A stretch of 64,000 nucleotides of DNA, from the NCBI GenBank assembly GCA_010909165.1, contig MU008176.1:984856-1048855 (forward strand), read 5' to 3'. The notes beneath the pieces were generated by a model. It was not told the origin of the DNA and ran no database searches. It saw nothing but the letters and a program-made list of their open reading frames with translations. The DNA is from Anthoceros angustus (taxonomy: Eukaryota > Plantae > Anthocerotophyta). Below are positions 36,337-38,592 of the stretch, piece by piece (positions within the stretch are counted from its first letter, which is position 1; each line of letters opens with the position of its first letter). The position numbers were made by a program, and so were the translations under genes.

Positions 36337-38592
36337 ATGGCCGCACACCTGGCTGCGGCAATCAGTGTGTCATCGTCGTCGTCGGCTTCCCCTGCTCCCC
36401 GTCGTGTAGCATCTGCTGTACCTCGCCATCCTCCGTTTGCGGCCTCCCAGGCTGCTCTCGTGAGGCCCTCTGACGGGCTTGCAGCCGCCAGGCTGTCGGG
36501 ATTGTCGTCCACTTCAGGACGATGCGCGTGTCGAGGCGCTTCCACGATTGTGTGCCAAGCGGCTCTCTTCCAGTTCCTCAACCTGAACAAGGGGAAGGAC
36601 AAGGAGCTGGTGAAGGGCAAGCTCTTGACAGAGATAGCGAGACTGGACAGAGGTGCAGACGCCACGCCTGAGGACAAAGAGCGCATTGACAAGGTTTACG
36701 ATGGGAGAAATGTTGTGTGAGTGTGGTTTGATGGTGCCAAATTTGCGGACTGACTTTGTCTCGTATTCATGTCTTCCAGATTGCTCGAGAGCTTGAAACC
36801 CTGAACCCCACCAAGGAGCCGCTCAAATCTCCTCTCATCAATGGAAAGTGGCTTCTGGTCTACACCACGTCTGAATCCATCCTGAAGACGAGCGTGAGTT
36901 CCTGCCATCTCCAGAAGAGTGAGAGCAGGGCCGCATTTGCCTTCCAGGCCTAACAGTTCTGGAATGGTGCATGCAGCGGCAGAAGTTCTTGAGACCTAAT
37001 GGGCCCATCTACCAGGCCATCAATGCAGGCACTTTGAGAGCACAAAATTTGGAGTCATGGCCATTTTTTAATCAGGTCTTGCCTTTTTCTCTCTCTGTAA
37101 ATGAGTTCCTCGGTATACAAGCACGATTCAGTTGCAGATCTCGGTGCTCACAGGCTTGGATGATATGCCTGTGCAGGTTACTGCCAACTTGAATCCCGTA
37201 AGCCCCAAGAAGGTGGTAGTCAATTTTGACTTCTTCAAAATCGGTGGATTGGTGGGTGTCTCTAGTCTCCCCTCCTTCCTCCTCAGCTCAGATCCATGCC
37301 TTTGCATGATGGCTGGTTTCATCCATAAGAACTGTTTCTGCTCCTCTGTAGTTTCGATTGTAGATACTTCTGAGACTGTATTCTGGAATTGTTATCTATT
37401 TGCTGCCTGCGGCACGTCGTGCATCCCTTAACCAGTGGCTTAGGAACTCTCTACTGTTTGTGTACTGCCCACAGTTGCCCCATGGTCTGGTACCTGAGGG
37501 TATTGGAAGATCTGAGAAAAGGATTTTGGATCGGAGTAGCACAAGGATGGGGATAGCAATAATAAAAGCACAAGCAAGCTGTAGTAGCAGCGAGGGCTTA
37601 AGCTCCGAAGAACCATCGTCCATAGAAGCTAAGAATGAGAGCTGGTGTGGTTTATGCGGAAGTGGAAGCGGCTGGATAAGTTGTGGCAAGTGTATGGGGA
37701 AGGGGGGCTTTGCAACAAAGCCTGGTCTTGCTGGTGTAAAGCAGACAGTAGGATGGGCTCGGTGCAAGTCTTGCTTTGGACGGACCCTGGTGCCCTGCAT
37801 CCTTTGTGGCCTTCCAGATGTTGGAGAGTGGGAAAGGTGGCAGGAAGGCATGCGCCATCGACCGGCAAAACAGCCGAGCTGACTATGCAAGTCTTGTGTG
37901 AACGATGATGTCCTGTGAGGCCCAGATCTTGTGATCAGGTTCACATCTAAGCTGCCTCTCAAGTAGCTTGGGAAGTAACACCCACCCGTTTAGAAGTGGT
38001 AGCAGCACCATGTACATTGACTCTGACCTGTGCCTGGATGTTTGAAGTCACTTGAGGTGGGGTGTCTGCATCTTAGCTAACAACTGTAAGTAGCCTCGTT
38101 TGTCATGGATGTGTGGGTATAGCTGGAGCTTCAGAACAGTGTTTCTTCTTGAGGAATGTTGTAGACTCTACACTGCTCCGCACATTGAATTGACTTCTGG
38201 TGACTGCCGTAAACAAGACCTTTTACTGCAGACAGATACGGGTCATACAAAAGTTTTCACGTATGTGGCATGGACGGATTAGCTTTTCTGACCCCTGCGT
38301 GCTCTCGCATTCCGTCTTTGTTTCTGAGCATCTTGCCTACATGTCCTGCAGATCAAAATAAAAGCACCTGGACGTGCAAGAGGCGAGTTGGAGATAACCT
38401 ACTTAGACGACGATCTGCGGTGAGTGAATCCGTTTTGTCGACTGGGAAGAGTTCACTCTCTCGCTGGCAGCATTTTGCAGCTTGGCTAACTCAGAAAAGA
38501 CATGACTGTGCAGGGTCTCAAGGGGTGACAAAGGAAATCTGTTCATTTTGACCATGGTGGACCCTGAGTACAAAGTCCCCTTAGAATCGTAG
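36337..38592 (+). CDS. Plastid lipid-associated protein / fibrillin (PAP_fibrillin), 6 exons
   Basis: Exons 36337-36693, 36780-36893, 36977-37075, 37177-37251, 38352-38419, 38514-38592 with GT-AG introns. Transit peptide plus [12 protein letters not shown]-type motif, [14 protein letters not shown] and [12 protein letters not shown]. Confidence 0.92.
37475..37882 (+). CDS. DnaJ-type zinc-finger (CxxCxGxG repeat) ORF nested in fibrillin intron 4
   Basis: Four CxxC units ([30 protein letters not shown]). Phase-0 acceptor ctgtttgtgtactgcccacag just before 37475 and an in-frame ATG at 37547. Confidence 0.72.
   Translation: MPHGLVPEGIGRSEKRILDRSSTRMGIAIIKAQASCSSSEGLSSEEPSSIEAKNESWCGLCGSGSGWISCGKCMGKGGFATKPGLAGVKQTVGWARCKSCFGRTLVPCILCGLPDVGEWERWQEGMRHRPAKQPS

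Follow-up and report, generated by a model that had tools for sequence, protein, structure and literature searches.

Evidence for a conserved zinc-finger gene nested, beside a SCARNA8-like RNA candidate, in an intron of an Anthoceros angustus fibrillin gene

In a 64,000-nucleotide stretch of the Anthoceros angustus genome (contig MU008176.1 of assembly GCA_010909165.1; hereafter the window), the fourth intron of a gene for fibrillin – a plastid lipid-associated protein – contains, on the same strand, an open reading frame (ORF) with four CxxC units resembling those of DnaJ zinc fingers. Is this ORF an independent gene that happens to be housed in an intron, an exon that can be spliced to upstream sequence, a passenger of an intron that is slow to leave its transcript, or an open frame of no significance? 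The reading we favor, with somewhat more confidence than doubt, is that of an independent intronless nested gene translated from ATG 37547, with a likely H/ACA guide RNA beside it in the same intron. A preliminary description of the locus had kept such a gene as the fallback to a model in which alternative splicing would lend the ORF the fibrillin transit peptide or produce a chimera: it is the fallback that is supported, by purifying selection, by conserved nesting, by the existence of a protein family and by RNA over the ORF. Coordinates of all features are collected in Table 1.

The whole ORF (37547–37882) is contained in the intron (37252–38351), and the host is spliced across it. The frame is open upstream as far as 37364, and the CxxC pairs start at residues 34, 46, 73 and 84. 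Four CxxC(xGxG) units in an ORF ending at 37882 had been described previously: the position and the four CxxC pairs stand, while the full CxxCxGxG is present only in the first two units, the third being CxxCxG (CKSCFGRT) and the fourth CxxCG. When the intron was shuffled 5000 times, a same-strand ATG-initiated ORF of at least 111 amino acids arose in 186 shuffles, none of which had four CxxC pairs. Because not one of the 5000 shuffles reproduced it, the four-CxxC ORF is beyond chance.

If the ORF encodes a protein, then relatives and a signature of selection are expected. HMMER searches of 1.84 billion proteins recovered 35 relatives at E≤1e-3 (15 of them at E≤1e-10), with alignments that span residues ~21–108, well past the cysteines. 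The best relative, P0001 (116 amino acids, 68% identity), is encoded on L001, a 6.9-kb contig of a distant relative. There the fibrillin exons occupy 2680–3033, 3114–3221, 3331–3429 and 3513–3587, then 4615–4680 and 4780–4845, and the zinc-finger ORF (3880–4230) lies between exon 4 and exon 5; the downstream neighbor of fibrillin is also kept. Comparison of the two zinc-finger ORFs over 84 gapless codons gave a ratio of nonsynonymous to synonymous substitution rates (dN/dS) of 0.14, at a dS of ~1.8 that implies saturated synonymous sites, and the differences at codon positions 1, 2 and 3 number 19, 17 and 43; the same per-codon count applied to pieces of the fibrillin exons gave a dN/dS of 0.05. 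Aligned with L001, the intron shows two islands of conservation only: the zinc-finger domain (70% DNA identity) and a non-coding block of 130 nt (83.5%). The rest of the intron (37–45% identity) is at noise level. The preliminary description had proposed conserved nesting and dN/dS as checks, and both speak for a gene: the ORF is found in the same fibrillin intron of a distant relative and is under purifying selection. On these sequence comparisons the ORF is judged to be a real gene, because it has 35 relatives, its nesting is conserved and its dN/dS is 0.14.

Conserved nesting does not extend to the family at large. No flanking fibrillin exons were found around the relatives in Sphagnum fallax, in Closterium, in two moss-like contig sets, in eight metagenome loci or at L017–L020. 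These non-nested loci rule out nesting as a general family trait; to judge from them, residence in a fibrillin intron is lineage-specific. Same-strand genes nested in host introns have been surveyed in Drosophila (PMC3814207): here as there a complete ORF lies in one intron, the host is spliced normally and different species keep the same layout. Unlike the Drosophila genes, however, the nested copy appears without the N-terminal exon or presequence of its relatives, the host intron also contains a putative guide RNA, and the host encodes a transit peptide and has phase-compatible splice sites.

What kind of protein would the nested gene encode? Named members of the family come from Sphagnum, Psilotum, Closterium, Spirogloea, Mesostigma, Picochlorum and Trebouxia, and every relative is annotated as 'hypothetical' or 'unnamed'. 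They share the signature WCxLCGxGxGW..CGxCxGxG..TxPGLAGV.G.VGWARCKxCxG....PCxLCG, followed by a W..W helix, and the window protein retains all invariant columns of the domain alignment. Existing profiles capture little of this. A search of Pfam with the window protein gave nothing at E≤1 except GRXCR1-2_C (E 0.14). PF00684 (DnaJ_CXXCXGXG) gave no match to it at E≤1 and matched one of 36 family sequences (the window ORF plus the 35 HMMER relatives) at E 0.0017; PF25436 (BSD2_CRD) likewise gave no match to the window protein and matched two of the 36 (E 0.0017). Against the PDB, the family profile reached BSD2 chain 9ci1 at only E 0.11, and phmmer produced only chance-level PHD/RING matches. A word-index protein search with the 111-residue ORF returned nothing, though P0001 is in that collection, which signifies low recall and not absence; an exact look-up of the ORF found no match.

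An AlphaFold model from the single sequence was poor (predicted local distance difference test, pLDDT, 49.7) and was set aside; with a domain alignment of 13 sequences the mean pLDDT was 87.5, and the model has four short strands and a C-terminal helix. Its top match among solved structures is Arabidopsis BSD2 (6ekb; Foldseek E 0.14, probability 0.95, TM 0.59 by target), for which VIA gave a Z of 4.0 and a root-mean-square deviation of 5.0 over 54 residues; further VIA matches are the DnaJA2 zinc finger (Z 3.9) and Anti-TRAP (Z 3.5). The matches are weak individually, yet coherent, in that all are zinc hairpins of the DnaJ cysteine-rich type. Language-model neighbors in the ESM Atlas fall into clusters partly with BSD2_CRD (score 0.89), which we take as a lead only. 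According to the model, the C-terminal ~76 residues would fold into a DnaJ/BSD2-type hairpin with two zincs and four CxxC pairs, after which comes a short helix; the domain may bind zinc and, by analogy with BSD2/DnaJ domains, might act as a chaperone or in a thiol-oxidoreductase-like role.

BSD2 (BUNDLE SHEATH DEFECTIVE 2) is a Rubisco assembly factor. Like the window protein it is a small green-lineage protein without a J domain, and the two have in common the 2+2 arrangement of four CxxC units with CxxCxGxG in the first two (PDB 6EKB/6EKC). The window family differs from BSD2 in having its own signature (TxPGLAGVxGxVGWARCK, PCxLCG and the C-terminal W..W helix), and the window copy, by composition, has no transit peptide. 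The central cysteine-rich domain of DnaJ (PF00684) and Anti-TRAP share with the window protein the CxxCxGxG knuckles and, as modeled, a beta-hairpin zinc module; the window protein is without a J domain and without a Pfam match, and only two of its four repeats are full. The likeness is weak. The earlier label 'DnaJ-type' thus holds for the motif and the predicted fold, whereas membership of the BSD2, PSA2, LQY1 or ORANGE families, also suggested, is unsupported. On its signature the protein appears to belong to a separate green-lineage family.

RNA-derived contigs were available from four runs and as many organisms: run X1 matches the window without differences, and X7, X16 and X20 come from relatives that are ~93–95% identical to it. 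The runs contain RNA, because their contigs carry GT..AG joints; the contigs show neither transcript ends, strand nor local depth, and rare variants are dropped from them. All five fibrillin introns – 86, 83, 101, 1100 and 94 nt in order – are confirmed in this material as GT..AG joints. The earlier estimate of introns of about 80–100 bp apart from a fourth of 1100 bp agrees with both the sequence and the RNA joints. Exons 1–4 measure 357, 114, 99 and 75 nt; because these lengths are divisible by three, introns 1–4 are all of phase 0, again as had been proposed. When each exon was searched separately against Pfam, the gathering cut-off of PF04755 (PAP_fibrillin; 22 bits) was passed by exon 2 (38.9 bits), and exon 5 gave a weak match (16.4 bits, E 0.0095). 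The product of exon 1 has no acidic residue among its first 30 amino acids.

Alongside the spliced fibrillin message, the intron itself is present in RNA. In X1 and X7 an unspliced contig (37222–38380) comprises the whole of intron 4 plus the k-1 overlap into exons 4 and 5. In X16 the unspliced contig (37222–38295) stops short of exon 5, and in X20, a thin run, only 37671–37972 and 38022–38211 were assembled, and the first 420 nt of the intron are missing. Depths of unspliced versus spliced contigs are 17.9 vs ~131 (X1), 84.9 vs 209–375 (X7) and 33.3 vs 118–128 (X16), which places intron RNA at ~14–40% of exon depth. The intron coverage is not carry-over of DNA, because the 134-nt intron of the neighboring gene has no unspliced contig in X7, X16 or X20. 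In X1 the neighbor's intron is retained (38918–39108, depth 26.3 unspliced vs 21.8 spliced). The pattern in X20 fits a transcript of the ORF and its 3' region better than uniform retention of the intron, and X20 and X16 together give a hint of a separate transcription unit. The distant relative offers an RNA-type contig, L002, and this too is unspliced: it runs from the tail of exon 4 through the whole intron into the head of exon 5.

According to the favored reading, then, fibrillin intron 4 would host two further same-strand genes, one for the zinc-finger protein and one for a SCARNA8-like guide RNA. The zinc-finger mRNA would be a colinear, unspliced transcript of its own, starting in the intron shortly 5' of 37547 and ending near 38260–38300; for this gene we infer an internal promoter, a start site and a 3' end, and for its product a cellular compartment. 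Pyrimidine-rich patches are seen in the 5' part of the intron, at 37258–37285 in the window (ctcccctccttcctcctc) and at 3712–3740 in L001 (ctcccttgcatgtttcttcctcg): these could be the Y-patch core promoter of the nested gene or plain polypyrimidine intron sequence.

Several observations weigh against an independent gene. The N-terminal 32 codons of the ORF are not conserved relative to L001 (37% DNA identity). Four ATGs precede the ORF within the intron (37296, 37306, 37309 and 37482) and would precede its start codon in any message whose transcription begins 5' of 37482; the last of them opens a short out-of-frame ORF (37482–37556) across the zinc-finger start codon. L001 also has an out-of-frame upstream ORF across the start codon (3770–~3906). 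Such a start-overlapping ORF would be of consequence only for a transcript that begins 5' of it. The proposed mRNA would moreover bear the small Cajal body-specific RNA (scaRNA)-like element in its 3' untranslated region (UTR), which is unusual; the structural matches score poorly (E 0.14, Z 4), and GRXCR1-2_C (E 0.14) is the one Pfam model to match at E≤1; and a stand-alone product may be without the targeting signal that its relatives appear to have. Finally, the contig over the intron extends into exon 4 without a break (in X1 and X7 also into exon 5), and part or all of the intron coverage could be retained intron or pre-mRNA.

This last point leads to the reading in which there is no separate transcription unit: the intron RNA would be slowly spliced or retained intron 4, perhaps as a consequence of H/ACA particle assembly, and the conserved ORF would be expressed in another manner or elsewhere. 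The continuity of the contigs with the flanking exons is what this predicts, the intron does host a candidate structured RNA, X1 keeps its neighbor's intron as well, and no promoter element has been identified for a nested gene. Nevertheless we consider the explanation unlikely: 14–40% of exon depth across four organisms is high for pre-mRNA, the X20 pieces are limited to the 3' part of the ORF and sequence downstream of it, and the X16 contig ends before exon 5. In a retained-intron message the ORF would lie more than 1.2 kb downstream, behind a long upstream frame that stops at 37431, and the purifying selection on it would be left unexplained. Scarcely credible, and already contradicted, is a chance or decaying open frame that yields no protein. 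The empty word-index search and exact look-up, and the want of a significant Pfam match, are what such a frame would give; the shuffling result (0 of 5000), the 35 HMMER relatives, the dN/dS of 0.14, the retention of the invariant residues and the conservation of nesting are not.

A different prediction concerns splicing. If the ORF serves as the terminal exon of a spliced mRNA, with 37474/37475 as its acceptor, then a 5' exon would supply a presequence, presumably in a minor or condition-specific form. The preliminary description had placed a pyrimidine-rich phase-0 CAG acceptor at 37474, and this is correct as to position and phase, the tract being moderately pyrimidine-rich (a fraction of 0.65 over −20..−4, confirmed acceptors at this locus ranging from 0.29 to 0.76). 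No stop interrupts the frame between CAG 37474 and ATG 37547, and L001 has a counterpart acceptor, ctctattcccctgtctgcag/TTG at 3840/3841, also in frame. The message could take one of two shapes. In the one proposed originally, a fibrillin phase-0 donor (36693, 36893, 37075 or 37251) is joined to 37475 to give a shared transit peptide or a chimera; in the other, the donor belongs to a small exon of the nested gene itself within 37296–37380. Joints from each of the four fibrillin donors to 37475 had been named as a check, and none is present: the RNA contigs of the four runs contain no joint ending at 37475, and the intron contigs of X1, X7 and X16 are unbroken across that position, yet broken at 37251/37252 and 38351/38352. 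A fibrillin chimera as a major form is therefore unsupported.

The N-terminus of the family is one reason to keep a spliced form in mind. Full-length relatives have 53–206 residues ahead of the first CxxC, and five of them (P0072, P0002, P0038, P0007 and P0012) have 0–1 acidic residues in their first 30, which makes them transit-peptide-like by composition; length and acidic residues were the basis of this assessment throughout. In the two nested copies the first CxxC is preceded by 33 (window) and 38 (L001) residues, and acidic residues number 4–6 (four in the first 30 of the window copy). In the annotated Sphagnum fallax gene a first exon of 23 amino acids is followed by a phase-0 intron ~53 amino acids before WCGLCG, and the Closterium relative has a first exon of 17 amino acids; the CAG/TTG acceptor lies 56 (window) and 50 (L001) residues ahead of WCGLCG. 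Short database entries call for care: at L020 (4624–4719, 5001–5333) the called start of P0073 is a GTG inside the acceptor tgtgcag/ATT, and short, 'N-terminally bare' members can therefore be artefacts of gene calling. The upstream exon MAIRSISGG... (MAIRSISGGAAPSRF..., donor GTAAGC) probably supplies the true N-terminus of P0073.

How much do these facts favor a spliced last exon? In both nested species an in-frame CAG/TTG is open to the ATG, and the acceptor at L001 3840/3841 has the best pyrimidine tract of the entire upstream region. Fibrillin donors 1–4 are of phase 0 in the window and, as the matching exon layout suggests, in L001 too; in relatives elsewhere a phase-0 intron lies between a small 5' exon and the zinc-finger exon, and it is the nested copies that are without the long acid-poor N-terminus of several non-nested relatives. 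L001 3702–3737 (MTATPLHVSSSF/GTGTCG) with a 103-nt intron would also join in frame. Set against this are the missing joint and the unbroken contigs, to which L002 adds an unspliced intron in the distant relative. The stretch from acceptor to ATG is not conserved (39% identity to L001); open frames of 24 and 13 codons with an in-frame AG readily arise by chance, and 6 of 30 AGs 5' of the window zinc-finger domain are in frame and open. A PAP_fibrillin match is present in none of the 36 family sequences (families at E≤0.01). On balance we regard a spliced last exon as quite unlikely, and its fibrillin-donor version, taken on its own, as improbable. The missing presequence together with a retained acceptor is predicted by the originally proposed model and is equally compatible with a relic acceptor. 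An 'M..PLH' mini-exon seemingly shared by the window (37296) and L001 (3702) was discarded, a 9-of-10 match being expected about twice by chance in stretches of this length.

The independent nested gene would not be the sole occupant of the intron: the most conserved block corresponds to a candidate box H/ACA RNA. It matches Rfam RF00286 over its full length (1–131) with 47.0 bits and E 2e-8, below the gathering score of 53, and the match recurs at 842–968 of L002 with 47.2 bits. At gathering thresholds Rfam gave nothing in the window, the scaRNA-like match being obtained only with E-value thresholds. SCARNA8 (U92) guides pseudouridines 34, 43 and 44 of U2 small nuclear RNA (PMC5473140). The window element resembles it in the full-length match, in the hairpin-hinge-hairpin-tail architecture suggested by the model alignment and the predicted fold, and in the intronic location; it differs in its score below gathering, an imperfect H box and a degenerate 5' pocket, and RF00286 was built mostly from animal sequences. 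The minimum-free-energy fold gives hairpin, hinge, hairpin and tail and is no more stable than that of shuffled sequences (z-score −0.32). The ACA is at 38247–38249, 15 nt downstream of the 3' pocket; AAA/AGA is found instead in L002. The hinge reads ACAUUG and lacks the final A, so the H box (ANANNA) is imperfect. The arms of the 3' pocket, UGGUGA and ACAGAUAC, look complementary to UUAUCA and GUAUCUGU of U2 around U43/U44. To judge from these features the RNA is likely to be a U2-modifying guide. A U2 gene was not found in the window.

Does the RNA travel with the zinc-finger gene? No match to the scaRNA-like element was found near non-nested zinc-finger genes at six loci, which rules this out. 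A 'poison exon' of 26/29 nt at 38232–38260 was also considered and dropped, given 1-nt indels, the full-length H/ACA match and the absence of joints.

Table 1. Features of the fibrillin locus and of its fourth intron (positions in the window)
Feature	Position	Strand	Remarks
Fibrillin gene	36337–38592	+	Plastid lipid-associated protein; six exons read from the sequence
Fibrillin exon 1	36337–36693	+	Transit-peptide-like N-terminus; phase-0 end; joint 36693/36780 in RNA contigs
Fibrillin exon 2	36780–36893	+	Pfam PAP_fibrillin match (38.9 bits, E 1.2e-9); flanked by RNA joints
Fibrillin exon 3	36977–37075	+	RNA joints; 85% amino-acid identity with L001 3331–3429
Fibrillin exon 4	37177–37251	+	Phase-0 end; donor TTG/gtgggt
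Fibrillin intron 4	37252–38351	+	1100 nt; removed in the main fibrillin mRNA; joint 37251/38352 in four of four runs
Candidate phase-0 acceptor	37455–37474	+	tgtttgtgtactgcccacag/TTG; in the frame of the ORF; no joint seen
Nested zinc-finger ORF	37547–37882	+	111 amino acids plus stop; ATG with A at −3 and G at +4
Conserved zinc-finger domain	37643–37870	+	Only conserved coding island of the intron; domain alignment A5, AlphaFold model
SCARNA8-like box H/ACA RNA candidate	38123–38252	+	Hairpin-hinge-hairpin-ACA tail; most conserved intron block, 83.5% identity
Fibrillin exon 5	38352–38419	+	Weak Pfam match; RNA joints; L001 counterpart
Fibrillin exon 6	38514–38592	+	Stop TAG 38590–38592; RNA joints; L001 counterpart

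Around the host gene, RNA contigs extend without interruption out of fibrillin exon 6, past the stop at 38592 and into the next gene (ATG 38741; window 38513–39224), which is spliced at 38946/39080 and separated from fibrillin by an intergenic gap of ~149 nt: the two genes have overlapping UTRs or are joined by read-through. On the other side, contigs of two close relatives (organisms B and C) reach ~480–530 nt 5' of the fibrillin ATG (window 35808–36337): fibrillin has a long 5' UTR, or a transcript from upstream overlaps it. The contig of organism B skips 36187–36314, with GT..GA at the ends and three other letters between, and resembles an indel more than an intron there.

It is conceivable, as a long shot, that the zinc-finger exon is a module for exon capture that entered the fibrillin intron without its presequence exon, kept its phase-0 acceptor, and in some tissue or condition is spliced to a phase-0 fibrillin donor, most simply that of exon 1. 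If so, two unrelated plastid proteins would depend on a single promoter and a single transit peptide, and the same intron would yield a U2-modifying guide RNA. The missing presequence and the in-phase position behind a transit-peptide host make the sharing of a transit peptide by alternative splicing a testable hypothesis. If the plain nested-gene reading alone holds, the outcome would be a useful correction of the annotation – two unannotated genes in one intron – and no surprise. The locus adds a clear example, conserved in evolution, of a protein gene lodged on the same strand in a plant intron, beside a likely guide RNA, and it defines an uncharacterized green-lineage family of BSD2/DnaJ-like zinc fingers that is captured by no Pfam model.

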